A program made the position numbers and the translations under genes. This document shows positions 27,968 through 54,848 of a stretch of 64,000 nt of DNA, one piece after another. The stretch comes from Lepidodermella squamata (Eukaryota > Animalia > Gastrotricha): NCBI GenBank assembly GCA_047495785.1, contig JBLDXI010000007.1, positions 4,030,001 through 4,094,000 on the forward strand, given 5' to 3'. The notes beneath the pieces were generated by a model. It did not search any database, was not told the origin of the DNA, and worked only from the letters and a program-made list of their open reading frames with translations. The stretch's first letter is position 1, and every line of letters begins with the position of its first letter.

Positions 27968-30900
27968 ATGTCTATCAACTGGATGATTGCATGTGCAGCT
28001 GTCGTCATTTCGACAGTACTAAAGCCATCACTCGCAACGTGGGTGCGCTGCTTCTCGCAATTCGACGATTCCTTCGACCAGATTTGCCGCCGAGACCGCG
28101 TCGGCTGTGACATTCTAGAAAGCTACAAAGTAATATTTTCAACTTCATAATTTTCCAGAAATTTGCCTGATTTGAAAATTGGCAGCGGGGCAATAAACTT
28201 AAACATCTAGCTATGTATTTCGATTAGTCATATGGAAATTCATGAATAATTTCTGATATTAAATGCAGAATTTCTGCCGACAAATCTGATATGTACGCGA
28301 TTTTCGCTGATCGCTGATACGGCCCTGATTTTATGGTCAATTTTAGGTTAGGGTCGGGGTTAGGGTTTGAGGCAAGCGTGTTTCGGGGTCCGAAATGACT
28401 AATATATGGCCAAAAATTGCGCCATTTGTAGAAGCAACAAAATTCGCGTCCATGTACGAGCATCGCTCAGCAAAATCGAAGAAGCAAATTTTGAGCTTAT
28501 TCGCAAATTACCGTTTATTAATGGGACGAATTCGCGCTAATCTGCGTGTATTAGCTTGTGAATATTTCAAAAGGTGGTCGCCAATGTTTACGATACTAAT
28601 GTGTACAATTTTTGAGATAACACATTGAATTTGTTACTGCAGATCAGAAGTTGGGTGAAATTAGAACCCTGAAATTATTAGTCTCGTGGGTACATCTCTA
28701 AGGGAACTATGTATGTAGAGGGGTAAATGATGAGTCGGTTTTAGGCTCATCCCGGAAGGTGTGTTGATCCCAGCACGTCAGATTTGTCGGCACAACTTCT
28801 GCATAATTAGGCGGATCTTCCCTTGAATTCTCCAGTCTCTGTAAGCTACCGTTAAAATTCAGCATCGAATTCAAAATCAGCGAAAAATCAGCTGAAAATA
28901 TGTACGAATTGCCAAAATCGCGTACATATGTATGGCTCTGTGTGTTGCGCCCGCGGAATTCTTAAAATCGCCGCGGTGGTGCGCTGCGGAATAATGCGCG
29001 AGTGCGCGCGATTGTTTACCTTTCTGCTTAATAGTGTGCAAAGGTGCGGTGTTAAGACTTTTGACGCGGAAACCACTATTCGCGCCGCGGAAAAATTAAA
29101 AAATAGACGCGGAAAGTAGCGATGAATCCGCGGAATTAAATCCATTAATCAGAATAACTTGGCGGCTGGTTTTTTTTGCAAAAATCATCCACTGGCCACA
29201 GAACCACTTCGTCACGTTAGCTAAACGCGGCTGATAGCAAACCGCTAGCACCTAGCGACTGGTATTAAAGCTCTATAATGGGCTAACTTTTTCGCGCAAT
29301 GTCGGCCAGATATGCCGTAAAAGGGATGTTCGCTATCGGTGCGCATGAACTGGGTGTTCGGCGGCTGCGTACCTATGGGACTCGAAATGAGTTTATACCG
29401 GACTGCGCACGAGGGTGGCTATAGTAAAACCGAAACAACCGCCCATTGCTAGCTCCTAGCACCTAATCGGGGTGGTTCGATAACCACTGAGACTGAGCCG
29501 AGCCATTTTACGACCCGTGTTACTCAGCTCTTTCCAAACGCTGGACGCTATTCCCCCGCCGACCCATTACAACATGTAGCAGTCAATTTCTTGAAAAACC
29601 GCGTTCGAATGAACCCTCTCCGTGCGCAGTTGTCACATTTTTATTGCCCTTATTGCAGGTCTGCAAGGCGCTCGCTCTCAAAAGCGGTGTTAATCCGCTA
29701 ATCCCTAATCCGCGTCTCAAGAGTTCCGCCCCTCTTCGCCGCCCTAGCCCTCTGTATTGCGCTGTTGACGTGACTCGCTACCTCAGGACACCGGGCTGTG
29801 TAAACAGCTTTGGTCAATTTTGCCGATTGTTGTCGATTTCGTTGAAGTTTTTCGAAAGTTTTTCGAAAGTTTTCACACGGCGCGCAAAAACTTGCAAAAA
29901 CTTGTCAATATCATCCATATCACATATCATCCCACTGGCTGAATTCGCTCATTTTTACGGTACCAAGAGCAACGGATATCGCTAGCGGCGCTTTGGTGGT
30001 GAAGATGTTTTACCGCCTTCTTTACCTGCGTATTACCTGACTCAGCGGCAACGGGTCAAGTCGACCCGCCGGTCACCAGTCACCTGTTGGGTCAGGTCAC
30101 CGGTCTGGTACTAGTCGTGAGACCATGAGACGTACCAGGACGCCGAGGCTTGATAAAAGGGGCAAAAACATCAGCTCGTGCCTCAAATCAATGCGACGAG
30201 CTCATGAATAATCCGTTTCGCTTTACACAGATTTTATTATAGGAGATTCGAAGCCTCGGCGTCCTGGCACGTCTCATGTTCGCGGCCGGTCAGCCGCTGC
30301 CGATTGACCGGTTTTCAACCGAAATATGTCACAAAACTCAGAAATTTTATAAATCGCGTCTTTTGTTTACTATTAGCGTCTTTTGACCGCGCGCACTCAC
30401 CGATTTCAGCGGGAAGCGATTAAATAAGCGCGGCGGATTAACATTTTGACCGCGCCTTCACAAATTCGCGGCGCGCGCACAAATTCCGCGTCCTTTTACA
30501 CATTTCAGCGTCGTGTTTACTTTGGGCGCATATGTATTTACGAATAGCCTCACTCCTAAACAAAATTAAAAAGAAATTGAAATTGAGCAACAGTTATTTT
30601 TGCTCAAGTCAAACCTGAATTGTCGAATTTTTATACTTGTTTCAGCTATCAGGCAGAGTTTACACGAACAAAACTTCGTGCATATTTGGGGTAAAACGCT
30701 TTCATCTCGCTGAATTTCTCGAGTCCTCCCTATTGGTTTGTTCAAACCCAGACTGCTCACAGCTGCTACAACCCGAAAACGCTGACCATTCGCTGTTTAC
30801 CTGGCGACATCTCTTGCCCGGCCGATTTCATTGAGGTATCATGGTAGCATTATAAATAATTTTATGTGTCTGTTTTTATTTCCGTATTCATGTTAAAGGT

Positions 30901-33900
30901 CGAGCGATTCAGGGGATTCGATTTGCTGCGAAATAGCCTGGCGGATTGCGAGAACTCGTCGAACGTACTGGTTTTTTAATTACATCATTTAGAGGGCTAG
31001 GAGCTGGGAAAGTGCCCAACCGTGGTACAATAGTAAAACCGAAAAAATGCTAGCAAGTTAGAAGATATGCATAATCGATCAACACAAGAAATTCTATCAT
31101 CCGAAATTACCCCGAAAATCGGATGGTTAAATATACATGGTGAAAACTTCCAAAATTAATCATTTCCATTTTCTCAGGTGAAAAAACAGTATATTGAAGC
31201 CCAAAGGAGTAGCCAGGATTTATTTTTGGGAGGTGATACTTTTTTTACCTGCGGCTTCAAAAATGTTGCGGTCGAAAAAACACTTAAAGGCCTACAGGGT
31301 GGCCAAAAAATTCCGCAGAAGGCGAATTCGATGCGCATCAATTTAATGAGGACTTTTAAGAAGTTGGAGAATTTCAAGCATTCTTTTGCCAATGGAACTC
31401 CTAAATTTCTTGAAACTCTTCATTAAAATGATGCGCATAGAATTCGCCTTCTGCGGAATTTTTTGGCCACCCTGTATTTGCGAGCGCGAGCAAAGCGAGC
31501 TTTAGCTTACGCTTTTGTCTTCGCCACCGTTGATGCCATTTTGCGTTGAGTACTGAGACAGGATGGTTTGACACTTTTAACATCCCTGGACGTGTTTACA
31601 CAGGAACTGAGGTATCAACGCTGTCTAAATGGTTCGAACTATGCTGCCTGCATGCCTACGTCGTTGCAATGTCCGTACGGAACGGTTGGTGGAGACAATC
31701 ATTATAATTGATTTTGCTTCTTTAGCTTTTTTGGCTGAAGCTTTAGGATTTTTGGTCAATACTAAAGTAAACGAAAGTTTAATTTTTGCTGTCTGACTCA
31801 TCGCAGGTTCCATCTCGCTCATATCGAACTCTTTCCATGTGTGCCGCCTCCTACCGTACCTTCAACTGACACTTTACAATTTATAATATAACTGGACTTG
31901 TGTGATTGCAATAGAAACGCGTCCCGTCGACAATGAGCCACACATTCGCTGTTTCAACAGGCAATCTAGTGCCTTCCTAGGCTGTCGGTTAGCGTCTAGC
32001 GGCTGCTCGAAGACTTCCAACGAAACTTCGGTACAACTATTTGTTAAGAAACTGTCAATTTCTTGAACTTTGTTATTGCTTCAGGGAATCAGTCCTAGGT
32101 CATACATTGATCGGGCACACTGTGAAAAATGGGTGAGATTTATTACTTGTATCTTATGAAGGGGAAGCAATAGCTGGCGCAATTACCAGTGTGGTGTTGG
32201 GAATCCGTATATCTGGATCTTTTTCAGAATGCAGCTGCTTGCCGGAAGGACGGCCGTGTTCAGTGCAGAAACAGGTGTCCAAGTGGTTGGAGTCTCGTGC
32301 GTACCATCATGTCAGTGTATTACTTGTTAATATCACTTTGCATCGCTAGGTCAAAGTTTTTCAAGCAACGCCGTCTTCGTTCGCAGCAGCCTATGCCGAG
32401 TGCTTGAGCTACGCAGCCGCGGTTAATCCGCGGGTAAAATTAAAGCATTGGATCAGCCGAGTCGCCCAATTTTAATTATTAATTTTTTCGTTTCGCATAG
32501 ATTCGCTTCAAGCAGTGCCTCGATCCTGTCACTTTCAATTTGGTTACTTGCGTTCGCACGATCGACAACTGCCCTGCTTCGTCTGTGAGTTGGCCAACAA
32601 TCCGTGTTCGCAAACGTTATTCTTTCCCTTAGACAAACGAATTTTCAGTTGACATCGATTTCACGACTTACGACGAATGTATCTCTGGTGAGCGTTCAGA
32701 CTTCAAACTTCCCTAAATAGGGATGTATATTATTAGCGACACTGTAAATGTTTAGATTATTCTCTGGTTAACTGAATTGGGTTAGATGGGCTGTGAAACT
32801 ATTTCGTTCACATCGAGGAAGATCTCGCACTTCGGAAAAAGTCCGAAAGTACACCGCAACGGTAAGTGTGAGAATCATGGAAAAATACGGCCAGCCAACC
32901 GTGCTCGGCTGTACTGTATTAAAAAACACTGAAGTGCGAGTTCTTCCGCGACGTGAACGAATTTGGTAAGCTCATAAAAATATTATGAAATGGCTTATAG
33001 AATTAGTAGTGAAAATGATTCGATCTACAGCTCTCATCGACTCGGAAATACAAAATCTTGGCGAACCCATGTGTATCAGCGAAATTCGGTACGTCGCAAT
33101 GACGTCCTGGAAAAGGAAATCAGTGTTGAAAAGCCCGAATGATCACGGGTTTTCCTGGCTAAATAATATCCCCGAATCCAACTTCGACTTCGAAAGTTGT
33201 TAATATCTCCGGCCACGGAGCTCCTTTTAAAATATTTTCATTTGCTAATAAAATTCGGCGGAACTAGGTTTAGGCTAAAATTTACTGTCGGATTTTGAAG
33301 TCACATCGTAATTTCAGATTAAATTATGGTATCTTATAAATCCTAGCCGGCATTCTTTTACAGCGTCGAAGCCTGCCAACTACCCACACATTCGTTGCTT
33401 CAAAAACGAATCACCATTCGAGTTTACGGGCTGTGTGGCTTCACCCGGCCAATGCCAAGCAGGACAGTCGAACGTGAAGCTTTTATTTTGCCAAGAACAT
33501 GATTCAACTCAAGGCTTTTGTTCTCTAGGCGATTGACAACAAAGTCTACAGTACGCTGGGCTTCTGCATGGCCGGCGTAAGTTTCACTAACTTGGTAAAC
33601 AAATTATCTTGATCGACCAATATTTTTGTATACAATTTGTATGAAATATGACGTTTATAAAATAACGGCCTTGTTATTCGGTATTTATGATTTATTAATA
33701 TTGGACTCGTTCAATTTTTCCTAGGATGTGCTCTACTGTATTCCGCCAAATCCCCCTAATGCAAATGCAACAGTCGGCTTCTGTCGAGCCGCGAGAGATG
33801 TCAATAGCACATGCCCGGACGGTCTTCGCTTATATCAACGATATCCTACCGGAAAAAAAATTCGTGAAACCGATGATGATCAGCCAATAGGAACGACATA

Positions 33901-36900
33901 TGATTACCCTGATAGCGGTTCATTCGGCGATCACTATGCTCAATGCCTCGAAAATCTGGTGAGTCCAAGTGATGCTAATAATTTAAGGCAGCGATTTTCT
34001 GACGACTCTTTTAGGGGCCGAGTGTAATTTGTTTGACCTCGCTGCAGCGCAAATTGGCGTTTTGTCAGAGCTCTGCTGGTGATAGCTGTGGAAATGAAGT
34101 ATTTCTGCACCGTATAGAATCACTACATCTGCATCTTTCTAAGAATCTATCAAACCAGTGGAAGCCACCGGCCCGTAGATGGCTAACCCTCCAAAAATGC
34201 TTTAGTATCTTGTCCAGGATTTTTAGGATTTCATTTTGTGTTTAACGCTAACTATCAAAATTTGGGAGATTGTATCGTAATCACCGTCGAAAGTGCATAT
34301 CTATTCGAAGAAATAATAATTGGTTTTTTTCATGCAGATTATGGGGAATGACCCTTTTTGGTTGATGTCAGAATCACATCTTAGCTAACATGCAAGACGG
34401 CGCACCTTTTAAATTCAATTTCCTCTCGTAGGCTGACAACTTCCCAGTCTAGCTTAGGTTTAAATACGACAGTGTGCTGTGTGAGGTAGTGTAACAGAAG
34501 TTCGAAGTTTTTTCGTGATTATGCTCTAACTTCAACTGATCTTCTTTGAAAGAAACTTGCCGATTGGGTTGTTTACGACAATCAATACCAGTGTATCTAC
34601 GGTTGGTTTCGAAGTCAGTTCCTAAAATCTGATTTATCGGTTGAATTTCTTTGAGAAGCACCCGCGGCTAACCTGCCTCACATTCGATGCTTCACGAACA
34701 ATACGGTTCAATGCATCCGCGACATACGCTCTTGCTCTGTTAGTATTTGATCGCCATCAACCTTTTTATTTTCATGGTTTCCTTTTTGCATATAGACTAT
34801 TTTCGATGCTACATGGATAAACACACTGGAACTGTGCAACACAGCAGTGAGTGATTAATTTTTCTATAATTATTTCTTTATTTTCTATAATAAATTTAAT
34901 AATTTGCAGATATTATAATTTTGACGTAAATTTTATCGAAAATTTCAGTTTATGAATAACTTATTAAAAATGCGGCTTGGAAAGATCAAAGGCCGATTAT
35001 TGATGCGATTAGGAATCGCGACCTAGAATTGCAGATTATAGTGATTGCACAGCGAATCGCAATCAATTCTATGTTATAATATGGAGAAGAATGATAATAC
35101 ATAAACGAGAAATATGCTTATTAGGCACAACAAACAACAACCATAGAGCTAGTTTTAAGATAGAGGTCCTACTCCTGACTAAGGCTGTAAACGCCATGGG
35201 CACCAGACGTTGTGATGAATCAGCATCGAGTGGTTGGAAAAGTAAACAAATCAGGTGATTTTTCGATTCCGGATATCGCATTCATGGCAATTTCCCCGAG
35301 GAAAAGTTTGGTGGTACCTGAGAGCGCTTTAAATGGTGAACACCACTATATTTTTTTCGAAATTTTCAGAGCAAACTAAAGCAGTGAAATCAAGAAAAAC
35401 AATTTGTTGATTTCAAATAAATTTACTTTAACTAATAATTAAATCGAAATTGAAGCGTATTTTGAATGAACCAGGTAATTCATATCAAGCTCTACATTTT
35501 GATGCTTGGAGCGAGCTTGGAAGATTTTTTCCTGATTTTCTAGAATTTTATAAATTATTCTGGTTGGTTTTTTACATTATAAAGATCGAGACTGCCCGTT
35601 GGATTCAATCCAGAATCTTTGTTGACAGCATGTGCGCCACATGCACAAGGTGTGGCTGAATTCAGTCCAGAGCTGGTACAGAGTTCGAATGTAGTGGAAA
35701 ACCATTCATTCAATAGATAAAAAAATTCCAGAAAATCAGAAAAAATTTGTCCAAGCTCGCTCCAAGCATCAAAATGTAGTGCTTGATAAGAATTACCAGG
35801 TCCATTTAAAATACGTTTCAATTTCGCTGCCAAAATGGCAGTTGTCATGTTTTATTAATCGATCGATTTCCTTTTTATGCGACTTTCCCCATTTTAAAAA
35901 TCATTAAAATTTCGCAAAAATAATCAATGTGTTCGTCCTTTCAAGGGCTATCTCGAACCGCCGGAAGTGATTGATTGTGATGAATCGTTCAAGAATAATG
36001 AGCGATCGATAATCACCTGATTTGTTTACTTTTCCAACCACTCGATGCTGATTCATCACAACATCTGGCGCCCATGGCGTTTACAGGCTTTCGTCGTTTT
36101 TACACGACGGAGGGGTACGGAGGCATTCGTTAATTCCATCTGTTGCTATCATCCATTTAGCGGCTCTGTTAAGACAAATTTTGATTACGCAACTAAAGAG
36201 TTTCAGAAAATTGAATCTTGATTTTTTCCGAAGCGTCAAGAAAGCAATTTCAAAAAGAAATTTTAAATTATATTTTCTTCTTAATTGGTACTCTGAAGTT
36301 ATTTTTACTAGTAGCCTCAATTATTTTATTCGAATATTTCGACTCGTTGAATTTTTTCGATAGGTAATTGTATTTTTGATTAAATTTACAAATTTTGCCA
36401 TTTGCCAGTCGAAAATTTGATCAGCAAAAGATTAATCGCCTATCAACCCGAACGTCGAAAATTGTTTACAATTGGTTCAGCTGATTTAGATGGCCATCGA
36501 TTGAGAATTTCGTCCTATTTTTCTAAAAAAATCCGTAACATACAAAAAAATACGTGTCCCGGAATTTACGCAAACATTTTTTAATTTTGCAAGTTTTTGG
36601 ACGTAATTTTGGAAAGAAATCCAAGGAGAATATTCAATCTTTCATCCGCGATTTTACCGAATAAATTAAAAAATTTAGCGGAGAAAACCCGGAATACTCC
36701 GATTTTAACTGCTTCGGTAATTTTCACTAAGGTATTTTACCCGGTTGGACCCCTTTCATACCCTTTCACGCCCTTTGACAAATGACATACTTGCTTACTA
36801 TTCTCATGACATTTTGAATTTTTCTTAAATTTTTTCAGCCCATGAGATTTACCTCGCATTTTAGATATTCGTCAACTATTTCCCCTGTGTTTCTATGTTT

Positions 36901-38259
36901 GATTAACTTATGGCTTGTAGTACACGGTTCGTTGCCTAGGGTGATTAATCATCCCCAATTTCGAAAAAATATTAAAAACGAAAACATCGCCGCGGCCTTG
37001 AAGAATAGAATTAGGTGACTCATTTTGACGCAAAATGCAAATATATAGCAAATTTTGATCACATTTGACAGTCAAAATATTCGGTGACATTCAAAAAATG
37101 TTTTTTTTGTTTCTCCATGGCTTTAATTTCGAGGGCCATAACCACGAAAATTTTCAGTTGGCTTAAGTTGATACAAATCCAGCCTAATAATGATTTGATG
37201 TACTAACGACTGATTTTTTTCCTGAAAAAAATAACGGCGGCATTTTTATGCCGGAAACAAATTAAAAATTGAAAATTCGCTTTTTCGCGAAAGCTCAGTT
37301 GCGTAATCAAAACAGAGCCTCGAAATAGGGGTGGCAACTGATGGCATTAACGAACGCCTCCGTAACCCTCCGCTAGTGTAAAAACGACGTTTGTCAGGAG
37401 TAGGACCTCTATCTTAAAACTAGCTCTATGACAACAACTGTTCAAAATTGCTGTCAGGATGGAAAAATGCAGCAGTTGGGAGAAAAGCGACTTCAAGCTG
37501 ATGCTTCTCTAATTTTTATATCGTTTTTTTTTCGTTCCAGGGTTTTCGGTATTGTTACGCTCAGAGCAGTGGAAACAGAATGTGTGTTGCTGCTACTCAG
37601 AATTCATCTTGCCCGGCTGGTTACGATGTGGTACTGTTTGAACGCCAGGATACACGACCTTATCATTGCTGATTTTTTTATGATTATTATAGTATGGAGG
37701 TGAAATCAGCGATACGACGGCAAGCGCGGGCTACGACAAATGTTTCATCGGAACAGCAACGGTAGACATGGATTTCTTTCTTGAATTTTACAAATCAGGA
37801 AACGTTTGCGATAATATAAAACATAAAGCATCTTTGAAGAATTCTCTTTGAACAATGCGAGAGAAATTATGCCGCCTGCTTTAATTTTTTGGGAAAAAGC
37901 GTGACTATTTAATTTAGCCAGATTTCGCAAACATTATAATTCGCAAAGAAAACACCATGTTGAGACCCGTTAGATATTTCCGTGAAAACAAAAAGTTGTC
38001 AAACGAATACCTTGCGCTACTTATTTGTTTACTCATTCCTGTTCTGCCAGATACCCCATTTCCGATGCTTTGACAGCACGACTAACGCGTTTAAGTTCTG
38101 CGCCCCGGATGGCGCTTCCTGTCCTGAATCAACGGTAAATGATCTCTGATAATCAATGATGATTTTTGTGACTTTTTCCACTCACAGCATAACCTTGAGA
38201 ATCCAAAAATCTCGTTTCAGGTGTACAAGGAGTGTGTCGATAATCAACTAGGCGACTGA
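27968..38259 (+). CDS. Secreted Cys-rich repeat protein, copy A (about 637 aa, 23 exons): 27968-28129, 30646-30690, 30752-30835, 30899-30964, 31604-31684, 31807-31855, 31915-32030, 32085-32132, 32228-32296, 32350-32433, 32501-32584, 32633-32687, 33364-33473, 33529-33576, 33725-33958, 34015-34098, 34553-34601, 34659-34738, 34796-34846, 37541-37630, 37693-37761, 38051-38134, 38188-38259
   Basis: Each exon is bounded by AG/GT and conserved in copy B while introns diverge. The joined exons (1914 nt) give one open frame: signal peptide MSINWMIACAAVVISTVLKPSLA, 12 four-Cys modules, several N-glycosylation sequons, no TM. The exon 16 donor and possible extra exons at 34300-34460 are uncertain. Confidence 0.85.
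35142..37430. mobile_element. CATAG...CTATG family non-autonomous DNA transposon in intron 19 of Cys-rich gene A
   Basis: 38-bp TIR CATAGAGCTAGTTTTAAGATAGAGGTCCTACTCCTGAC; 8-bp TSD ACAACAAC (35134-35141, 37431-37438); absent from copy B. Confidence 0.9.
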
Positions 38260-38639
38260 ATGTGACCTAGAAAGGACTATAGAGTTTAACAGCTCATTTG
38301 AAAACATTTCATTCTGAATTCCAATACGATTTCGATCCATTTTGAGTTTCGAGACTTATGCAGAATTGTAAAATCGCCTTTAAATCCACCATCGATTCGT
38401 TTTGCAGAACCAGATTATTTTCCTATTATCTCAGTTCTGGAGACAACTTCGATTCTTTCGTTGCTTATTAGTTGAATTACAACTATATTCTAAAAAAACT
38501 TTCGATGTTTTAGGCCGTTAAATTCTACAATGAATGAGAGCTATCTGCTGTTTGGCTCGACCGTGTAGCCATCGCACTCGTAGTCCAGCATTCTGTCTGT
38601 TATAATCAAAATCGGCATCGCAGAAGATATGCATTGGAA

Positions 38640-38935
38640 CCTTGGCTATTTATTTGCCTGTATGGCGCTTTCACCTACACCCTACACGAATGCTATCTGA
38701 ACTGACCGCATTGGCAGCATGGTTGCAACTCTGGCATCAACGGTGCCTCCGAAATCGTCGACGACGCGACCGGCTGCTACTTGGTCTTGGTTTCCGGCGA
38801 ACACAAAGAGAACCTCACGCTCGCTGCCATGTCACGCTCCTTCGAATTCATGAAGAATACCTGGTGGTGGCGTGTGAAGGCGAAGAGCTTCTACAATGAA
38901 GGCTAACCTGCTGGGCGGCGTGCAAGGCCATTGAG
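38640..38935 (+). pseudogene. Degenerate truncated adenosine kinase fragment (ADK2-derived)
   Basis: Matches ADK2 about 24690-25017 (CTGGCATCAACGGTG, GACCGGCTGC, GGTTTCCGGCGA, GAAGGCGAAGA, GGCGTGCAAGGCC) with deletions and frameshifts. Confidence 0.8.
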
Positions 38936-39283
38936 CAAAATAAACGCTTTCGATTTGATCAATTTATTACTTTTCTCAATAATTTTGTCACGATAAAACA
39001 GCAGGAGTTCTGCATGTAAAAACGGGCCAAATTTGACAAGAAACATCTGAATAAAGTGTGACTGATTTTAAATGCTCGAAATAGCAGGGTTGATTTTGAA
39101 ATTACAAATATATGTATATAGCTAAAAATCATGAGACGTACCAGGGGACGCGACGCCTCGATTTAAATGCCAGATTTTTGCGTTATTTTTTAATAAGGTC
39201 CGAAGGTCGTTGTAGCTAAAAATAACCTCATTGGCAGCGATCATAGACATACGTCGCATTTACACGAGCTACTTCGTAATTAT

Positions 39284-39554: not shown

Positions 39555-39877
39555 CTTCGTAATTATCGATGTTAATTACTTCGGCTGTTGCGTCATCATT
39601 TTCACTTCAACCCAAACGAGCGCGGTTTTTAATTTTCTGTGCAATTTGTATGGGCGCTGTTAACAAGTCACTGCAAGGTGGTTTAAAACTCAAATTTTGC
39701 GGTATCAAGTAGTCGCATCTTTCGCTGTCACGTGATCTATACAATTCTCCTGCTGGCAAATGATCTATATGGTAGATTGCGCGATAATCAATTTCTTAAA
39801 AGTTGCCAAAATCCTCCTAAAATGAATTATGCCACGAATCGCGTCACTGCGGCAGTTTCAAGCAGCCCTGTATTGTA

Positions 39878-40218
39878 CAGCGTGTCCCATGAGTCCCATC
39901 TCATGGCCAGAAAATTTTAGAAAAATTCGAAAAATCACGAGAAAAGTAATCAAGTATGCCACTTGTTAATGGGATTAAAAAGTCCCGAGAAATCTTGTCC
40001 AGCCGGGTAAAATACTGAAAATTACCGAACCAGTTACCATCGGGGTTTTCCGGGTTTTCTTCGGAAACTTTTACATTAATTCTTAATTCTTTTCGGTTAA
40101 ATCGTGCGGATAAAAGATGAAATATTCTCTCGGTAGGTTTAATTTAATGAAATTAGTTGAATTTCCTACGAAAAGTCGCCAGATGACAAAACAGTTGCGC
40201 AACCTCTGGGACACGCTT
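39878..40218. mobile_element. Tc1/mariner-like MITE (inverted copy)
   Basis: TA-CAGCGTGTCCC ... GGGACACGCT; reverse complement of the 26961/44491 family. Confidence 0.7.
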
Positions 40219-42509: not shown

Positions 42510-44490
42510 TCTGCGACCAGCAAAAATCTCATTCATGAAAATCATGTATTTACGCAAACATCAGTTTTTTGCAGTGGCCTGAATATCTCACTCTTAAAGA
42601 AAACGGCGGGTCGCGAAAATATCAGCTATTCTGTTTTCAATTTTAATTTTTATTATCGAGCAAAATCGTATCAAAGAATTAATTTCGACATGCCCATGCA
42701 AAACCTAGAAAATTCCCAAAAAAATCGGACGGGGATAAAAGTTATATATTTCGACAGCTTAGCTCATCCTGGTAAAGAAAATATTTTTTCTGGAATTTTC
42801 AGATCAAATTTTAACAATTTTTTCCGCCCCGACATAATCGACAAATTTCGATCTTCGGGATTTTTGTAGCTTCTTTGCGAATATCTAGATGACCTTGCAA
42901 AGGCCCCAGGATGACGAGCCTGGTCTCGTTCGAAAGAGCGCTAAAAGTTGTATCAGAATAAAAATTATCAAAAAATTAGAAAAATGACGTTTTTCAAAAA
43001 ATCGATTTGAAAATGGGTCGATTTTACATGCATTTAGCTGGGCGCACATGCCTCAAATAAAAAGCACAGCAATGTGGCTGTGCACATGGTGACCTTTGCA
43101 CCCTAAAATTTTGACACTATGGCAGGATCGTAAGCGTCCGATCTTTACTATTATCTATGCATGGCCCAAAATCGCTACCTCAAGAGCGTAAAATATCTCA
43201 AATCCAGTGATATAATCTCGCTGCGATAAATGCATGTAACACTTCATTTATATTTGTCTGTTATCGAAGATCTGAATTACGAGAGTCAATAGAACATGTC
43301 AACAATTGAGAAGCCGTGCCTGAAAAACAAACAGCAGAAGGAAGATTTGATTGATGATATGGTGACGATTTATCATTGTATTGACATCATTGATTAGTGA
43401 GATGTTCAAGACTGCTACCTCGGCTGAGTAAATTATTTCTTCTTCAGAAATAAAATTATCGAGCAAAGCATGAGATTGAGTAATGATTCATTCACCAAAG
43501 GCTATTAATTAGTTTGGGCTGATGATTGGAGATCAAAACTGCAGAATGTTCTCATTTCGGACAATTACTACGTTGAACTTCAATTTCTCCTCACCGTTCA
43601 ATCGCTAAAAAAACAGCCGGGCGTTGTTTCTTTAAAATTAAATCTGAAAACTCCGGAATCTTTTCTCGTGGTAGCTTTTTTGCTGGAAAAAAAGCGCAAA
43701 AGAAATTCAGGCTTATTACGAGGACAACTGAAATCTATCCACATGGTGGTTTGAAAGTGTCGCAGCTGCGAATCCAAAAGGCAGAACCGCAACAAATGTT
43801 TTCAGAGCAGCGGGTTTTTGGTTGATTGACGCGATTTTCAACTGCGCGGTTTAATCATTTCGGAAATTCCAAGGGTTGTTAAATCATTGTTGCCATCATT
43901 ATTTAAACAAAGTTAATTGCTATCGGCTGTCGTAAACTGGGAAAAATCCGAGTTACATACTTAAAAAAAGTAAAAAGTAACCTGATTTCTCCCGCAATCG
44001 CTAATGCGAGCCAAAAGGGCCGGTCCGTTACGAATAATCGCGTGCTCCATCGAACACGTGCGCTGATGCGCCTTATTTTTCCAGCCACAATGCTTTTTGA
44101 CAGCACGTGATTGAACATGTTTACTGTTTTTCCCGGTGTAAAGGTTTTGTTGGGGTGCGTTTCAAATTCATAAAAATCCGAAGTTTCGACTGTATTATCA
44201 ATTTTGTGAGTCATAGACACGAAATTCAAGTTACGCATCAGCTACAAAATGTCCCTACTTTCTTGTGATCTCATCGATCTTATCGAGTAGCCCTGCGCGA
44301 TAAATTTATTATTTTCGATTAATTATTGTCCGCATTAAATTCCGTGCGGCGTCAACTCATCCGCGGTCAACTCGTCCAGCGACAACTCATCCGAAAATAA
44401 ATGCATATTTAAATAATTATTTTTAGTGACAACTCATACGTGAAAACTGGTCCGGCTCGGCCGAGCTGTCGCGTATATGATTTGTCACTA

Positions 44491-44868
44491 CAGCGTGTCC
44501 CAGAAGTTGCGCAACTATTTTATATTTTGGCAATTTTTTCTAGGAAAATCAACTGTTTTTTTTTAATTAAACCAACCACGAGAAAATTCCATCTTTCATC
44601 CGCGATTTCACCGAAGAAGTAAAAAATTAACCGGGTAACCCCGATGGTAACTGGTTCGGTAATTTTCGTTATTTTACGCGGTTGGAACACATTTCTCCGG
44701 ACTTTTTACTCTGGACTAACAAGTGGCATACTTAATTACTATTCTCGTGATTTTTCGCATTTTTCTAATTTTTTTCGGGCCATGAGATGTGACTTCGACT
44801 CTCATTTTGGAGTTTCTGAACCATTTTCTGTGTATTATCTTTGCTTGCGTTACTTATGGGACACGCTG
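44491..44868. mobile_element. Tc1/mariner-like MITE nested in another inverted-repeat element (about 44367-44928)
   Basis: TA|CAGCGTGTCCCA...TGGGACACGCTG|TA; the outer element has inverted GTCCAGCGACAACTCATCCGAAA ends. Confidence 0.8.
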
Positions 44869-45843
44869 TAAAAATAATTATTTAAATATGTATTTAATTT
44901 CGGATGAGTTGTCGCTGGACGGGTTGACATTTCAATTCTCGCTGTTCCGTACCATTGAGGATGGTAATTTTGAACACTTCAACCGTTAAGGCTCTGACTC
45001 TGTTCAAATATTTATAAATATCTATATAATATACAATAAATAACTAAAAATCCGCTCAGCCATCTGGCTTTCCAACGTCTGGGTAATATCTCAGTATTAT
45101 CAATTCTTCATCAAATTTTGGTGATTTTTCTAAGATATATGTTGGGAGTGAATTCATTTCGTACCAGCTTTTCAGATTGTGATGCCGAAGTCGGTTTGAC
45201 CTGAGCTTTCATGAGGTCTCCAATTTTCGCAAGACGCAAGACGCGAAAATGTCGAGCAATCTATTTATACATTTTTCCGAAATTAGACCCAATGATCGTT
45301 AAATACTTAAAACTCACAGTCCCATTCCTATTCATGTGTAGCCAAATTTTCTCGTCCTACATTATTCACAAATTATAAATCGATTGAAAATCTCTATGAA
45401 AAACTTAAAACCACCAGAAACTCACAAAAATCAAAATTCGCCGTATAAAAACTTATTTCAATTTTCAGAATGTGTGGAAATAATTTTTTTCGAATCGAAA
45501 ATCATGGAATTACCCTCTTTAACTAACAACTGAAAATAAAAAATTCGTAAAAATCTGAATTTTTCGAAAAATAAACACGTCCAAAATTTAGGTAAAATAT
45601 TTCACCGCAGCACTATTTAACAGCCACATGAATTTGCCCTCATGTTTGAAAATGAATTTTCGCTTAATTTCCAAGGGTCTTCTCCGGAAACTTTCAGTTT
45701 CCAGTTTTTCCTCGATAAGCGCCTTTATTTGCTAGTCAATCGCTCTATTATATCGGGTTTTTTCTTTGTTGTACATAGGCTGTTCACAACAACTGATCTG
45801 CTTTCTACTAAACAAATCCGACTTGGTTTGAGGCGAATCCGCA

Positions 45844-48800
45844 ATGTCTATCAACTGGATAATTGCATGTGTATTTGTCGTCATTTCGACAATCCTACAG
45901 CCATCACTCGCATCGTGGGTGCGCTGTTTCTCGCAATTTGACGATTCTTTCGACCAGATTTGCCGCCGAGACCGCGTCGGTTGTGACATTCTGGAAAACT
46001 ACAAAGTAATATTTTTAGCAGATTCGACTGTAGAAGATTCAACCAATTTTATTAAATTAAACCTACCGAGAGAATATTCTCTCTTTCATCCGCGATTTAA
46101 GATTTAACAGAAGAAATTAACATTTACCGGAGAAAACCCGAAAACCCAAATGGCAGCTGGTTCGGTAATTTTCGTTATTTTGCGCGGTTGGACCAAGTTT
46201 CTCCGGGCCTTTTTAATCCCATTAACAAGCATTATACTCCCGTTTTGCAGGTCAAAGGTCACACGTGCACACGTGATCAAAACGTGTGATCAAAACACTA
46301 AAATTGTAGGTTGTTGCTAGTGTGGTAGTTTCATTTCGTCATTTCGTCACCATGAAAAAAATAAATAAAAAAAATGTTGTGAGCTGGCGTCGAACTATCA
46401 ACCTCTGGTTTCCTGAGCTATAGCTTGAACCACTAAACCACACAGGAGACACATTGAACCAGTCTTAGAATCAATTGATATAGGCCACAGTTAAAGCATA
46501 CTTCAACAAGATAGATGCACACGATTTTAAGACAACTTGCTTGCTTAGTGGTTCCAGCACTAGCACTGGCCATGAGATGTGTGATTTCGTCTCTCATTTT
46601 TGAGGTTCAGAACCCTATTCCGTGTATTTCTTTGCTTAGGGTAAATAATTCAAATGGGTGATCGTGGCGGGCCAATTTTTGTACCACAGGTAGCTCTTGA
46701 ATCTGGATAAATCCAGGTAAATTTTGGCTCTTATCGGGTCGATCATTTTTGCGTAAAACATTCGCTGAACACTTTTCCATCCATCAAAACCCTGCAATCC
46801 GTACTTCAATTTTTTCTGGTTTAAATTAAAAAACTAAAAATTAAATAAAAATTGAGATTGAGCAACAGATATGTTTGCCCAAGTCAAAACTCTAAATTAC
46901 CTAATTTTTATCTTTATTTATTTCAGTTATCAGGCAGAATTTACGCTAACAAAACTTCGTGCATTTTTGGGGTAAAACGCCTTCATCTGGCTGATTTCTC
47001 GATTCTTAACTATGGTTTGTTCGTAAAATAGACTGCTCACAGCTGCTACAACCCGAAAACCTTGACCATTCGCTGTTTACCAGGCGACATCCCTTGCCCG
47101 GCTAATTTCATAGAGGTATTGCGAAAGCATTAAACGTAATTCCATGCGCCTATTTCCATTTCCGACTATTTACTTTGAAGGTCGAGCGATTCAGGGGTTT
47201 TGATTTGCTGCGAAATAGCCTGGCGGATTGCGAGAACTCGTCGAACGTACGGATTTATTTTACATTTCAATAATTTAGAGGGCTTGAAAAAGTGTCATAA
47301 ATCGGTGCAATGGTAAATGAAAATTCTTTATGAAATAATTTATACGCAATTGGGTGTTGATGCCGGATGGTTCGACACTTTTAACAGCCCCTGGAATTTC
47401 TCCCCTTTTTATCCAGAAACTGAGGTATCAACGCTGTCTAAATGGTTCGAACTATGCTGCCTGCATGCCTACGTCGCTGCAATGTCCGCCCGGAACGGTA
47501 AGGTGGATAAATTTATCCTCTTTCGACTGAAGCTTAGGATTGGTCAATACACTATAGTTTAATTTTAGTTGTCTGACTCGCAGGTTCCATCTCGCTCATA
47601 TCAAACCCTGTCCACGTGCATCGCCTCCTACCGTAACTTCAACGGAAATTTCCAAGTTCTGATATAACTGGACTATTCTGTTGCAAATAGAAGCGCGTCC
47701 CATCGAAAATGAGCCGCACATTCGCTGTTTCAACAGGCAATCTGGTGCTTTCCTGGGCTGCCGGCTAGCGTCTAGCGGCTGCTCGGAGGCTTCCAACGAA
47801 ACCTCAGTAATGCTATTGGATAAGAAACCATCTTCTATAACTTTCTATAACTTTACTATTACTTCAGGGAATCAGTCCTAGACCATACATTGATCGAGCA
47901 CACTGTGACAAATGGGTGAGATTTATTATATCTTATGAAGCGGAAGCACTTGAGGAAGCACTTGAGGATAGCGTTGGAGGATTTCGGATTTTGTATCTGA
48001 AATTGCTCTCGGTTGTCTTTTTCAGAATGCAGCTGCTTGTCGGAAGAACGGTCGTGTTCAGTGCCGAAACAGGTGTCCAAGTGGTTGGAGTCTTGTGCGT
48101 ACCATCTCGTGGATGTATTACTTGTTAGGATTACTCTGTATCGTTAGGTCAAAGTTTTTCAAGCAACGCCGTCGTCGTTCGCGACAGCCTATGCCCAATG
48201 CTTGAACTACTCAGCCGCAGTTAATCCGCCGGTATATAGCTAATGCATTAGATAAAGGTGACTCTATTATTTCGTTTTGCCTAGATTCGTTTCAAGCAGT
48301 GCCTCGATCCAGCCACAATGAACTTGGTTACTTGCGTTCGCACGATTGACAATTGCCCAGCTTCGTCCGTGAGTTGGCTACCAATCTGTGTTCGCAAGAG
48401 TTGCTGTTTTTTTAGACCAACGATTTCTCAGTTGACATCGATTTCACGACATACGATGGATGCATCTCTGGTGAGCGTGACTTCGGACGTCAAACTTCCC
48501 TAGATAAGGATGTACCTATATTGCGGATTCTCAGAGTTATGTCCTTTAAGGAAATTCGCGTTTGAAAGCCCGAATTTACACGGCTTTTTCTAGCTCAATA
48601 ATATCCCGAATCCAATGGCGCGGCTTCGAAGTTAGTTTTAATACCGAACGCCGAGCTCATCCTAGGTTCAAACTAAAATTTACTGTCATATATTCCGAGC
48701 CACATCTTACTCTGTAATTTGTCGAAATTCCTCGAAATTCTAGGCGACATTATGATTTTCAAATCGAGGCTAATTTTTGTTGCAGCGCCGAAGCCTGCAA

Positions 48801-51800
48801 ACTATCCACATATTCGTTGCTTCAAGAACGAATCACCATTCGAGTTCACGGGTTGTGTGGCTTTACCCGGCCAATGTCAAGCAGGACAGTCGAACGTAAA
48901 GCTAAAGCGTCAAGTACATGATTAATTTCAGAGCTTTCAATCCTCAGGTGATCGACAACAAAGTGTACAGTACTTTGGGCTTCTGCATGTACGGGGTAAG
49001 TTTTACGTTTTACCGGTGTGTTTTTTAAGAATCGATTTGTTGTTTGAAATTACGGGTCACTGAAAAACAAGCTATCCACTTTATCAGAAATTTTAACCAG
49101 GTGCATTGTCAAGTCAAGCCGGTGCCTCTGCAGGTACCTGAAATTGTAAGAATTTTCTAAAATTCAGTAGTCAAAAATTAGATTATCCCGGCTTTTGCCG
49201 AAAATGGATGGTATCTGAAACCCAAAAATTGAAAAGATCATGTGTAAAATTAGTTTAAGAAGCATTGTGGAACCGCTGGTAAGTTGAACTTTGGCGCGCA
49301 CGCTGATTGGTCAATTTATCGTTGCTAATGACTCCGGAATGAAACAATTTAGTCGTGCGATCCACTAATAAAATTATTTTTTATTTATGCAAAAAATGAC
49401 CTTGCCACACCCTCTGCACGGTTTCCATTGACCACGAGCGTAAACTCCATATTAATGGTGGTAAATTGCTGCGGCAAAAGACACTTGTTGAAAAAAATCT
49501 TATGGATCGTACGACCAACATGTTTCATCCGGGAGTCATAGCAACGATCAATTGACCAATCAGCGTGCGCATTGGATTGGACTTTTAAGTGGTCACACAA
49601 TGAAGGCCAAACAGCACTCACGAAATCAGCACCATTTGCAAGAAAAAAGAAACAATTCACTTTTTAACGCTCAATTTTCAATTGTTCAGAACAGTGCTTC
49701 TCAACCTTTTTCCATTTTGGGCCATTTTTTAACTCATTTTCCATCCCTGCGGGCCGCATGACTTCGGCCCTCGCCGGCGGGCCGCTACCACTGTATTGTA
49801 AGAACACAGCGGGCCGCATGTTCATGATGTGAGCGAAATTAAACAGATATTAATGCTGTTCAGTCGCTAATTTCATTGCAATTTAAAACACAAAAAATTT
49901 AACAAAATTGGGCAATCACGAGTAAATTATCAAGTAAGTATCTAGTTTTATGAGCAATTTTTATGAGCTAACAATGTCATTTCCGCTCATCGCAAAAAAA
50001 AGAAACTAGAAAATCATAACTGGAATTTATTTACGCAAAATATTCAAGAACGGGCCTTGAGGCTTGAGGGCATTTGAAAAAATGGATTAGAGTGAATGGA
50101 CGAATAAGGGAAGGAGTGGCTTTAGTGGCATTAGTGGTGTGGTATAAACTGCGTTAAGTTCAGTGGCGTAGCCAGGATTTTTGTTTGGGGGTGACAATTT
50201 TTCACCCTCGACCTCGAATCAATTCGCGAGCGAAGCGAGCTTTAACTGACGCTTTTTTGGGCATTTTCAACCCGAAAATGGGCTTAACACTTTACGGGCC
50301 AAATACGCATATTTGCGTATACGAAATTTTGCAGAAAATGGCCGTATACGCACATTTGCGTAGGCGAAAGTGATGCTTTTTTGCGATTTTTTTCTTCATA
50401 AACTGAATGCCTAAAAATCACGAAAACTGCTTTGATTAGTCAATTAACACCTGAAAAATCTAAATGTCAAGTCAAAATCGCGATAGAATGCTTTATTGGT
50501 CGAAAAATCACTGATTATCGATTATCGATTATCGATTATCGATTTTAGTTCGACACTGAATTTTTTCTAGATTACCTATCAGATTCGCCACAATTCAAAT
50601 CGTTATCTCAATATCTTCCCCTATTTTTAAATGTGCAAGAAAGACCAGTGACAAATTAAAATCAATATTCGTAAGGGAGTTTTGGCTGCAATTTTGGGTG
50701 TTCAGTGTAATGTGGAATGCAAAGCGCGATCATAAAAAAAGCTTGCTTAAATTAAACTGCAACTCTGTTTGAGTTATTTTTTCGAATGAGCAAAATATGA
50801 ATATTTATTCTCGGTGCCTTCTCTGAGTATATGGGAATGATCAGATCCTTCCTATTTTATGGCTCCCGGGGAAGGCGGGTCAAAAAATGTTCAGAGATGG
50901 ACAAGGAAATTCAAATTTCCTTTCACCCACCTTATCCCCCGTATACGCATATGTGCGTAAATACGATTTGCAAGATGGATCCGTATACGCATTGGTGCGT
51001 AAACGCTTTTTGCAGTAAATGGCCGCATACGCACATGTGCGTAAGGCTTTTGCAATGTGGGGCCGTATACGCAAATATGCGTATCTGTTTTTTGGTTATT
51101 ACGTAATATGGGTGCATCCAAAAAATCCGGGACATCGACCACTGATCTTAGAGTTCGACCCTCTTTCAGAAAATACAATAATCTCGGGGTCGAATTTTCG
51201 GACTGGCACGTCCAAAAAGGCTCGGACGTTAAAGTGTTAAAATGCATCAAAATAGGGATGATTCATAGGAACCTTGTACTTGGACCTTAAAGCTATTTAA
51301 AAATAACTGATAACAAGGCTTTGCGGGCCGCACCCAATACAAGTTACCTATTTGAGTGCCGGGCCGCACAGAATCGGGCTGCGGGCCGCATGCGGCCCGA
51401 AAAATGAAGGTTGAGAAGCACTGGTTCAGAAAAATCAGATTAAACTCACCCGAAGTTCAGGACTCATTTTGCCAGCATGGCATGATCGGAGGTATGAATT
51501 TTATAAATCAGCAGAAAGCTTTTTTCATGAAGAATCCTACCGTGCCCAAGGCGGCACCTATAGCTAGTTACAAGTAACGGTTGATAGCTAAGTTAGTGAG
51601 GTCGACCTCATAAAGGGCGATTCAATATCGACTCGAAAATCGACGAAATATGTAGATAGGTTTCGGCAACAAACGGCTCCTTCACGTGGTCATGGCGCCA
51701 TGACCACGTGAAAGAGCGGCACGCGCAAAAATGTTGAAAACACAACAACATTTCTAAGTAAAAAGTAAAACATGCTAGTTTTCAAAAAGGATACGCGCAC

Positions 51801-54800
51801 AATTGGATCCGTTCAATTTATTCTAGGCTGCGGTCTACTGTATTCCGCCTAATCCCCCAAATTCAAATGCAACAGTCGGCTTCTGTCGAGCTGCAAAATG
51901 CCCGGACGGTCTCCGCTTTTACCAACAATATCCTGGCTCGCAACGTATTGAAAACAATTGGAAGGATAATTCAACAACTGGATATGACGAATACTTTGAT
52001 CCTGATGTTACATTCGGCGAGTACTATGCTAAATGCCTCGGAAATCTGGTGAGTCCAATTGAGACTAATGTGCCACACCGCTTTATCTGATGCCAATTTC
52101 AGCGGCCGAGTGTACCTTGTTTGACATTAAATAGCTACTTATTGGGGTTTTGCGCAGGCCCCGGAAGTGATCTTTGTAAAAACAACGCTTATGTGAGTTC
52201 TTTTACCTTGAGTTATTTCCCAATGTATATGTCGTATGGCGCGCAACAGATGAACGCTAGGGGATAGAGCTGTGCCGGTCTGAAAACTCAGAGCAACTTT
52301 TGGATCCCGTTGATTTTATTTGTTGAAAAATTATTTTTCTACAAATTAAAATTTTATACAGGATGATTTTTAATTTACGTGAAAAATGTATTTATCTTAG
52401 CAACACGATTGTAACGCTGCTACCGGCATTTACTATTTGTCAGTTGGACAGCGGCGCGCCGTGAGATCTTCATCTCGATCTTTACGCTTGAGATCGTGCG
52501 CTCGTTTGGCCTCTCGTATTTTTTCATTCGCACTGCTAGTACTTAGCCATTGATGAGATTTTTCAAAGAATGATAGTGATTACGCTACGGGTCAGGAAAA
52601 ATGATTTAAATGAGCGATTAAATGCACACCGCTAATTATCTATTGTTGGACTGTAGTGTTGAGAGCAGATAAAGGTGGCATTCAAGCAAGCTTGTTCTAT
52701 TCCACTAAAAACACATCACAAGGAATTCCTTTGTTAATTCAGTATAATTCTGACAAAAATAAAGTTAGGATACAGCTTCGACTCAAGGTTCCAGCAACTT
52801 TCGCAACGATATTTCTTAGCAAGGTTTCCCCCGACTACGTCATTATTTTTGTCACGGATTGATGAGAAAAGATGCGTTCCCATCAAGCAGTATTATGAAA
52901 AGTCATATTACCTATTTATTCTGGCACAAAAAACTCCTATTCATTTTACTAGAACATTCGATTTTTTTCAAATTTTCTTCCGGGCTTATGTAAGGACCCT
53001 TCTCTTACTGTGCGTCTCCTACTACTTCTTATCGGTCGAGAGTGAGTATCCGCAATAGGTAAGTTTTAAATTTGTAATACAATAATGCGTAGTGTGAGGT
53101 GTAACAGAAAATAGGCTATTTTTTCTTGCCCATTTTTTTATTTGTCTGATCTTCTTTGAAAGTTTTCTGCCAATTGGACTGTTTACGACAATCAATACCA
53201 GTGCCTCTACGGTTAGTTTCGAAATCAGCTCCAAAAATATGTTTTCATGGTTGAATTTCTTTGAAAAGCACCTGCGGCTAACCTGCCTCACATTCGATGC
53301 TTCACGAACAACACGGTTCAGTGCATTCGCGACAAACGCAATTGTTCTGTGAGTATTTGATCACCATCAATCAATGTTCAATGTTTATTTTCATGGTTTG
53401 CTTTGTTGCCTCTATAGAATGTTTTCGATGGTACGTGGATAAACACATTGGAAATTTGCAACACAGCAGTGAGTGGTTAATTTGTCTGCAACGACATCTA
53501 TTAATTTTTATGTTAATGTTATCCAAGGTTTTAGTTTATGAATGACTTATTAAAAACGCGGATGGCTAAATCAAAGGAAGATTAATGATGCGATTAGGAA
53601 TCGTGACATAGAATTCGGACCATCTTGATTATTATTATTATCATTTCGAAAATATATTCATGAAAAAAATATGATGGTACAAAATTCGAGGAAACAGAAG
53701 GGCACGCAGGCCACTAGCTCTGAACCGTATTGCGGGTAATGTTATAATATAAAACAGTTCTGAAGAGGGAGAATGTAAATAATCAATAATAACAATAATT
53801 GCAATCAATAATAATAATAATGTTGCAATGACAGCTTAAAAACTATAGAATAGATTAGAATATAATCAAAGCTAATGATTTTCCAATTGTTGAGTTTTTA
53901 ATCAACTGTTGTCGTTCCAGGGGTTTAGGTATTGTTACGCTCAGAGCACTGGTAACAGGCTGTGCGTTGCTGCTTCTCAGACTCCATCATGCCCGGCTGG
54001 TTACGATGTGGTATGGTTTGATCGCCAGTTTTTACACAGCGTGAACAGCAGTGCTGAAACTTGTGCTAATATAGTATGGAGGTGAAATCAGCGATTCGAC
54101 GGCGAGTGCGGGCTACGACAAATGTTCCATCGGCACAGCAATGGTAGGCGTCGAGTTCTTTTAATGAAAATTAAATTTAATTAAATTATTTGATAAATTT
54201 AAATTTTAATGAAAACTTCGACTATATAAAGCCTTTTCTACTTTCTGAGAGGAATTCGTTTGCCTGCAGAAAATGGCTTACATTGCTTCTAACCGTGTCA
54301 TTTTTCACGAAAATATAAGTATCAAGACTTGATAAACCGTTATAACTTCCGGTATCATAACATGAAAATTCCCAATATTTGTGACAAAATCGTGAATAAT
54401 AAAATTCCCGGATCTTCGCTATTTCATTTTTGAGAACTTTGAATTCGAGAATAATTGATAATTTTGCAGCCATGGTGGATATTACCGTAAAAAATTGAAC
54501 AGGCCGCAGCCATATTGCTTGAAGGGTGCCGAATAGAAATCTTTTGCTAGACTGCAACATTTTCGTATTTTATGCGGTTTGAAAGTTTGCCAAAGAAATC
54601 TTTCTCGCTAATAGGTTATATTTATTTTTGTCTTGCCAGATACCGCATTTTCGTTGCTTCGACAGCACGAGTAACGCCTTCAAGCTATGCATTCCTGATG
54701 GCGCGTCCTGCCCTGAATCAACGGTAAAACAGTTTTCACTCTGTGTAAATGCATCATTTATTCATTTTCCCACTTGCAGCAAAACGTCGAGAATGCGAAA

Positions 54801-54848
54801 GTCATATATCAATCGTACAAGAAGTGTGTCGATAATGATAATACCTGA
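45844..54848 (+). CDS. Secreted Cys-rich repeat protein, copy B (about 634 aa, 23 exons): 45844-46005, 46927-46971, 47032-47115, 47181-47246, 47417-47497, 47584-47632, 47691-47806, 47868-47915, 48026-48094, 48148-48231, 48285-48368, 48416-48470, 48786-48895, 48948-48995, 51827-52048, 52103-52192, 53163-53211, 53269-53348, 53418-53468, 53921-54010, 54075-54143, 54640-54723, 54780-54848
   Basis: Same exon structure and phases as copy A; open frame of 1905 nt; all 48 module cysteines retained; only in-frame indels. Confidence 0.85.
49692..51423. mobile_element. hAT (Charlie-like) non-autonomous element in intron 14 of copy B
   Basis: TIR CAGTGCTTCTCAACCTT/AAGGTTGAGAAGCACTG, 8-bp TSD GTTCAGAA (49684-49691, 51424-51431), subterminal GGGCCGC repeats. 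Confidence 0.88.
50288..51236. mobile_element. piggyBac-like MITE nested in the hAT element
   Basis: TTAA|CACTTTA...TAAAGTG|TTAA; internal quasi-palindromic TACGCA(C/T)ATGTGCGTA repeats. Confidence 0.65.

Follow-up and report, generated by a model that had tools for sequence, protein, structure and literature searches.

The 64,000-nucleotide stretch of Lepidodermella squamata DNA analysed here (contig JBLDXI010000007.1, positions 4,030,001 to 4,094,000; hereafter, the window) carries two neighbouring genes, A and B, which are both transcribed and spliced and whose products are strings of 12 four-cysteine (four-Cys) modules of a kind undescribed in every library searched. We consider it reasonably probable that A and B are expressed tandem paralogs for secreted 12-bead proteins, that the bead is a lineage-limited domain, and that the proteins serve as extracellular multivalent scaffolds or binders.

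Comparison of the window with itself by blastn revealed two collinear copies, A at 27775-38309 and B at 45643-54896, in nine blocks of 71-83% identity. Exons were chained where both copies showed an open frame, AG/GT borders and a consistent phase, and doubtful places were curated by three-frame inspection. Each gene has 23 exons on the + strand; all 44 introns are GT-AG, and A and B agree in the position and phase of every one of their 22 introns. The products are 639 (A) and 636 (B) amino acids (aa) long, with an aa identity of 81%. Introns of both genes mostly measure 47-70 nt, and a few reach 0.3-2.8 kb. The original prediction, made from the letters of the sequence, had proposed two intact paralogs running from 27968 to 54848; the 23 open GT-AG exons of each copy bear this out, and both borders proved exact. 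Four micro-exons of the automatic chain (33134-33157, 34015-34030, 34553-34617, which was in the wrong frame, and 34992-35017) were found spurious by three-frame reading, and frame inspection also led to the replacement of a GC donor at exon 2 and of a reading that ran through intron 9. These replacements were confirmed by the transcript joints described below, one of which fixes the exon 2 donor of A as GTAAAA at 30690/30691. Exon 18 of A has a tandem NAGNAG-type acceptor (34656-34659) at which either AG is in frame; only 34659 is shared with B and found in a transcript contig.

Two public sequencing runs contain sequence of the window: X1, from 2015, whose kind was guessed as RNA, and X2, from 2024. 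In the latter, introns are covered as well as exons, and it probably stems from the source genome. X1 was aligned to positions 30600-34900 (4,301 nt). Its word content covered 17% of this 4.3-kb stretch as against 83% of exon 15, and its depth was zero inside the long introns. Contigs of X1 joined exons directly at 30690/30752, 30835/30899, 30964/31604, 32030/32085, 32132/32228, 32296/32350 and 32433/32501, and their loose ends spelled the next exon past exons 12, 17 and 19 and showed the joins of exons 1-2 and 6-7. In all, the X1 contigs directly support 12 of the 22 introns, each at its predicted borders. Since genomic DNA cannot lack introns, the guess that X1 is RNA was borne out. Some X1 contigs match A with zero differences; of 19 variant letters checked in other contigs, 14 are exactly those of B. 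Given that letters of both types occur in the contigs, both copies are transcribed and spliced. Mapping of RNA had been proposed as a check on the gene model, and the model stands, as the spliced X1 contigs join its exons.

Between A and B, the synonymous divergence (dS) is 0.35, and the ratio of nonsynonymous to synonymous divergence (dN/dS) is 0.34 over the whole protein, 0.92 within modules 8-9 and 0.21 in the remainder; the value for the whole protein and that for the remainder support the purifying selection that had been predicted. Divergence is concentrated in modules 8-9 (33725-34601 in A; 51827-53211 in B), and all five of the five aligned paralogs show indels in the Cys3-Cys4 loop of module 8. 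The value of 0.92 for these modules, together with the transposon-rich surroundings and the high-copy repeats in long introns, could suggest that the copies are decaying duplicates or repeat-borne exon debris without a function of their own. We regard this as extremely improbable, given that at a dS of 0.35 neither copy has lost any of its 23 open exons, its splice sites or its 48 module Cys, that dN/dS is 0.21 outside modules 8-9, and that both copies are transcribed and correctly spliced.

The nucleotide identity of exons is 88%. Alignable intron bases are 80.6% identical, but just 17% of intron bases align, since the long introns differ by insertions. The introns had been described as diverged and transposon-filled, which holds for the high-copy repeats and the low alignable fraction; the description needs qualifying for the short introns, which are the majority, and for the identity of the bases that do align. 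Very high-copy repeats lie in A introns 4 and 12 (31176-31607 and 32904-33047), and the depth of X2, summed over contigs, rises to 40,799 at 31320-31463 and 2,810 at 32904-33047, compared with about 50-150 on the flanks. Another repeat, about 200 bp long and with copies 73-80% identical, is likely to be a small non-autonomous transposon; it occurs upstream of A (27009-27204), in A intron 19 (36626-36751), between the genes (39962-40169, inverted, and 44541-44711) and in B intron 1 (46029-46229).

Of the 49 Cys in each protein, 48 belong to the 12 modules and the remaining one to the signal peptide. Eleven modules are each encoded by two exons, 'a' for the first three Cys and 'b' for the last, and module 8 is a single exon. 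The frame C-x7-14-C-x3-9-C ... aromatic-x2-6-C fits all 12 modules of A and B, and 48 of 48 module Cys columns are kept in A, B and a paralog on contig C4 that is 60% identical. The N-terminus is hydrophobic with small residues at its end, just before module 1, and this character is kept in paralogs and relatives though the sequence differs. No transmembrane segment was found in the mature protein, in which the highest 19-residue hydropathy is 1.07, and the C-terminus of both products is hydrophilic, with no hydrophobic tail. From the signal peptide we infer that A and B are secreted; with 9-11 N-glycosylation sequons, they are probably N-glycosylated proteins of about 68 kDa. A tblastn search of the window found no C-type lectin exon, the stop codon lies directly after module 12, and a search downstream of either gene found neither a C-type lectin exon nor another head exon. 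A and B were therefore placed in a module-only class. On all these points the original prediction held well: it had named a signal peptide and 12 modules with this Cys spacing, no transmembrane segment or obvious glycosylphosphatidylinositol tail, and conservation of all 48 Cys and of the splice sites (here, all 22 intron positions, all GT-AG). Its picture of a secreted, disulfide-bonded string of beads agrees with the presence of a signal peptide, with the invariance of the Cys and with the confident fold predicted for the module of a relative.

The modules also appear to be ordered at a higher level. When module-module similarity was compared with Cys-fixed shuffles, the mean z was 3.9 for modules three apart, 1.1 for adjacent ones and 0.5 for those two apart, and split-codon introns occur only before modules 4, 7 and 10. 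The periodicity and the placement of these introns support a putative three-module super-repeat.

Although the two genes had been presented as a duplicated pair, they are not isolated, being members of a very large family in this genome. The assembly comprises 121 Mb, with the window on contig C7, and a search at the DNA level placed paralogs on C4, C42 and C43. At least four further 12-module paralogs share the exon structure (C4 at about 203-237 kb, C42 at about 1035-1040 kb and C43 at about 690-709 kb; loci L009-L014, L017 and L021). On C4 one gene is complete: its 23 exons encode 648 aa that share 60% identity with A and keep all 48 Cys, and a second C4 copy adjoins it as a tandem pair. 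For C43, exons 2-23 were recovered, and a suitable first exon lies about 11 kb upstream of them; the C42 paralog was followed over exons 1-14. Each of the 12 modules keeps its own identity across paralogs at 60% identity. A half-module profile gave 946 candidate places in the genome, and all 150 of the 150 scored were significant (expectation value, E, of 5e-6 or better). The exact coding pattern P-H-(I/V/M)-R-C-F occurs 317 times in the genome, compared with 3 times for a reversed control. The module is among the commonest extracellular building blocks of the genome. Contig C4 (2.9 Mb) is a hot spot of the family, with 86 among the 100 listed of the 317 exact motif matches. Single-exon PHIRCF modules also lie on the - strand at C7:4103854-4103943 and 4108478-4108546 (locus L058), 10-14 kb past the window end, which places the window at the edge of a larger family cluster.

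At many places of the family a whole module is one exon, and such genes open with an exon encoding a signal peptide and W-V-R-C-F-S-Q. The first exon of A and B, which holds the signal peptide and the first three Cys and is of this type, matches loci L015, L018, L019, L020, L021 and L064. Some relatives end in a module fused to a C-type lectin domain: Lectin_C (PF00059) scored 23.0, 24.5 and 31.6 bits against a cutoff of 22.6 (L015, L016 and L023), and an ESM Atlas search agreed on the lectin at L016. These module and lectin genes (L015, L016, L018, L020 and L023) share the first exon, the PH(I/V)RCF module and the Cys frame with A and B. They differ in that few modules are visible in the stretches examined, the PHIRCF module is one exon and the end is a Lectin_C domain, whereas A and B have 12 modules, nearly all of two exons, and no head domain. 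A profile of 36 single-exon modules (A2) was searched against the spliced products of A and B with hmmsearch. Module 4 scored 62 bits over profile positions 2-52, modules 1, 7 and 12 scored 25-33 bits and module 10 scored 13 bits; clear matches were limited to these five modules. Since the matches span exon junctions, they check the splicing model independently. They also show a common descent of the PHIRCF-type modules.

The fold of the module was predicted with AlphaFold2 on A2 as a single-exon relative, giving a mean predicted local distance difference test (pLDDT) score of 89.2 and a predicted template modelling (pTM) score of 0.69. In the model, strands at 8-13 and 19-24 carry Cys1 and Cys2 respectively, a helix at 46-50 carries Cys4, and there are two short bridges; this is the first confident predicted fold for the domain. 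Given that Cys1 and Cys2 lie on opposite sides of the modelled hairpin and that the Cys2-Cys3 loop has 3-9 residues, the disulfides are probably Cys1-Cys4 and Cys2-Cys3. Foldseek of the A2 model against the PDB gave nothing at E 0.001, and all matches of an ESM Atlas shape search with the model stayed under a template modelling score of 0.5. MbtH-like proteins, the bacterial partners of nonribosomal peptide synthetases, are possible neighbours of the module, by shape only.

Searches of the sequence libraries gave the same picture. Ten exon pieces, one of which spans all of module 8, were submitted to Pfam hmmscan at E up to 10 and gave one sub-threshold match only, to Lustrin_cystein (PF14625), at 15.6 bits versus a cutoff of 27 (E 0.02) and on exon 20 alone, which is half a module. 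Two whole modules (52 and 53 aa) gave no match, the Lustrin_cystein match being lost on the whole of module 11, and 36 single-exon relatives gave noise only. A profile search against all PDB sequences returned nothing at E 10. Profile A1, built from PHIRCF-type half-modules, which are the best conserved, was searched against 1.84 billion representative proteins and returned only two false matches (P0001 and P0002), both of which are spurious low-complexity artefacts. ESM Atlas feature searches with module 8 and one single-exon module gave no usable match, and literature searches by motif and descriptive terms, which did not include the species, found nothing relevant. The mismatch to known spacings that had been noted before was upheld, as no Pfam match rose above its cutoff and no model of EGF, Kazal, Kunitz, ShK, CBM14, WAP or TSP1 was listed at E up to 1-10. 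The reach of the protein library can be judged from a POGLUT2-like neighbour gene in the window, whose best matches there, spread over molluscs, echinoderms, annelids and cnidarians, are 51% identical; the library therefore seems to be without this animal or close kin, and the lineage to be poorly sampled. The blank among 1.84 billion proteins would accordingly be meaningful for annotated animals, not for unsampled kin, and the family appears, as far as the searches reach, to be restricted to a little-sampled lineage.

The module may alternatively be a very diverged member of a described Cys-rich superfamily, such as Sushi (complement control protein, CCP), Kazal or follistatin-like, Lustrin cysteine-rich or EGF-like domains, as small disulfide domains are often missed by sequence and fold searches. 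The nearest functional analogy is with CCP: both are four-Cys beads of about 50-60 residues in head-to-tail strings, often with one exon or exon pair per module and with fast evolution outside the Cys frame, and CCP modules likewise occur in module-only secreted proteins (factor H) and beside C-type lectin domains (selectins, which combine C-type lectin, EGF and CCPs). The size, Cys number and placement before C-type lectin domains thus favour such a relationship, as does the exon 20 match for Lustrin. However, the module has the frame C-x7-14-C-x3-9-C-x10-40-C in contrast to the long first and last loops of CCP, lacks the CCP Trp, and ends in a helix in the predicted fold where CCP is all-beta. 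The Sushi/CCP model (PF00084) gave no match at E up to 1-10 with exon pieces, whole modules or the 36 relatives, and no CCP structure was among the fold matches. The likeness to the Lustrin repeat consists of a local 'C ... C-P-x-G-Y' stretch in module 11a and of repeated Cys modules in invertebrate secreted proteins. Lustrin repeats contain six Cys, two of them forming a terminal CC pair, as against four in the module of A and B, whose Lustrin score is sub-threshold and confined to half a module. Descent from a described superfamily is, in our judgement, unlikely.

The C-type lectin domains at the ends of related proteins in this genome favour an extracellular recognition or scaffold role for A and B. 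Each module of about 50 residues would be a rigid bead in which two disulfides lock the hairpin to the helix. In the relatives, strings of beads would form a stalk before C-type lectin heads, with A and B as the head-less class. By analogy, A and B most probably work extracellularly, as multivalent scaffolds, binders or regulators in the same recognition or matrix system, and the fast-evolving, indel-rich loop of modules 8-9 would be the best candidate for a variable binding surface.

A different role is conceivable for proteins of this type. A and B are long, repetitive and rich in Cys, carry 9-11 sequons and no enzymatic or lectin head, and have several paralogs, all of which would suit structural parts of a secreted material (mucus, adhesive, cuticle, egg coat or matrix) rather than partners of a lectin system. 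They have, however, none of the low-complexity, Pro/Thr/Ser-rich or Gly-rich linkers typical of mucins and adhesives, and the identity that each module keeps among paralogs only 60% identical fits specific surfaces better than bulk material; we regard the structural role as a serious, though less probable, alternative. Secretion, richness in disulfides, tandem duplication and a fast-evolving segment are also features of toxins or antimicrobial effectors. Such a function seems very improbable for proteins of 640 aa and 12 beads, far above the typical size of Cys-knot toxins, which match no toxin family and whose relatives carry lectin heads, not toxin domains.

Several observations weigh against our proposal of secreted, multivalent scaffolds or binders. 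The function of A and B is reached by inference only. X1 was no more than guessed to be RNA, though its intron-less joints cannot be genomic DNA, and A exons 21-23 and most B junctions rest on conservation and profile match, not on reads. No canonical AATAAA was found within 650 nt of either stop codon. Seven of the 12 modules share the Cys frame but score 0-8 bits to A2, a weak homology. The window's own module 8, modelled with five paralog rows, folds poorly (pLDDT 59), and only the order of elements, strands and then a C-terminal helix with Cys4, agrees with the A2 model. The disulfide pairing is derived from strand geometry and loop lengths, not from coordinates.

A bolder version of the proposal, which we put forward tentatively and think unlikely to hold in full, is that the module founds a new fold-level superfamily and is the main stalk-and-bead element of the lineage, that A and B are soluble regulators or decoys of lectin recognition, and that the loop of modules 8-9 is the specificity site. 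If true, the family would parallel, by convergence, the CCP repertoire, in which factor H stands beside selectins. Disulfide bead domains are a familiar theme; what is new is the transcript proof, the module-only 12-mer subfamily, the genome-wide counts and the confident predicted fold. A large share of the animal's secreted repertoire may be invisible to standard annotation, and profile A2 could recover it. Exon-pair modules, the three-module super-repeat, tandem duplication and domain shuffling would together illustrate how a lineage-specific extracellular repertoire is built. The exons of both genes are listed in the table.

Table. Exons of genes A and B in the window; X1 denotes the 2015 run and A2 the profile of single-exon modules.
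Feature	Position	Strand	Content and support
Gene A	27968..38259	+	23 exons, 639 aa; signal peptide and 12 four-Cys modules; module-only
A exon 1	27968..28129	+	signal peptide (~23 aa) and module 1 Cys 1-3; exon type also opens paralogs and lectin-tipped relatives
A exon 2	30646..30690	+	module 1, fourth Cys; X1 joint 30690/30752, GT..AG
A exon 3	30752..30835	+	module 2a; X1 joints at both ends
A exon 4	30899..30964	+	module 2b; X1 joints 30835/30899 and 30964/31604
A exon 5	31604..31684	+	module 3a; X1 joint at acceptor
A exon 6	31807..31855	+	module 3b, split codon at end; X1 loose end joins exons 6-7, B-type letters
A exon 7	31915..32030	+	module 4a, PHIRCF type; A2 62 bits across exon 7/8 junction
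A exon 8	32085..32132	+	module 4b; X1 joints 32030/32085 and 32132/32228
A exon 9	32228..32296	+	module 5a; X1 joint 32296/32350
A exon 10	32350..32433	+	module 5b; X1 joint 32433/32501
A exon 11	32501..32584	+	module 6a; X1 contig, 0 differences
A exon 12	32633..32693	+	module 6b, split codon; following X1 loose end is exon 13 start
A exon 13	33364..33473	+	module 7a, PHIRCF type
A exon 14	33529..33576	+	module 7b; A2 spans exons 13-14
A exon 15	33725..33958	+	entire module 8 in one exon, long variable loop; X1 contig, 0 differences
A exon 16	34015..34098	+	module 9a; exon chain
A exon 17	34553..34601	+	module 9b, split codon; X1 loose end past 34601 is exon 18 start
A exon 18	34659..34738	+	module 10a, PHIRCF type; acceptor shared with B and in RNA
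A exon 19	34796..34846	+	module 10b; X1 loose end is exon 20 start
A exon 20	37541..37630	+	module 11a
A exon 21	37693..37761	+	module 11b; conserved in paralogs
A exon 22	38051..38134	+	module 12a, PHFRCF
A exon 23	38188..38259	+	module 12b and stop codon
Gene B	45844..54848	+	23 exons, 636 aa; A-like architecture; B-type letters in spliced X1 contigs
B exon 1	45844..46005	+	signal peptide and module 1a; X1 loose end is B exon 1 end joined to exon 2
B exon 2	46927..46971	+	module 1b
B exon 3	47032..47115	+	module 2a; X1 variant letters are those of B
B exon 4	47181..47246	+	module 2b
B exon 5	47417..47497	+	module 3a
B exon 6	47584..47632	+	module 3b; B-type exon 6-7 join in X1
B exon 7	47691..47806	+	module 4a; A2 match, X1 variant letters
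B exon 8	47868..47915	+	module 4b
B exon 9	48026..48094	+	module 5a
B exon 10	48148..48231	+	module 5b
B exon 11	48285..48368	+	module 6a
B exon 12	48416..48476	+	module 6b
B exon 13	48786..48895	+	module 7a; A2 match
B exon 14	48948..48995	+	module 7b
B exon 15	51827..52048	+	module 8, whole module
B exon 16	52103..52192	+	module 9a
B exon 17	53163..53211	+	module 9b
B exon 18	53269..53348	+	module 10a
B exon 19	53418..53468	+	module 10b
B exon 20	53921..54010	+	module 11a
B exon 21	54075..54143	+	module 11b
B exon 22	54640..54723	+	module 12a; A2 match
B exon 23	54780..54848	+	module 12b and stop codon

Other coding sequences were observed in the window. Overlapping long open reading frames (ORFs) of 361 aa (-) and 338 aa (+) lie in a locally GC-rich segment at 24455-25540, and the 361-aa frame had no Pfam match. 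Two long ORFs of 1190 and 391 aa occupy the - strand at 4167-8936, and a 257-aa ORF at 11569-12339 (+) has pentatricopeptide (PPR) repeats. The 374-aa ORF at 812-1936 (-), with Disintegrin and ADAM10 Cys-rich domains, is probably one large exon of an ADAM10-like gene. The POGLUT2-like gene mentioned above is an intronless 519-aa ORF at 9465-11021 (+), a POGLUT2 (KDELC)-like O-glucosyltransferase with a Glyco_transf_90 score of 300 bits.

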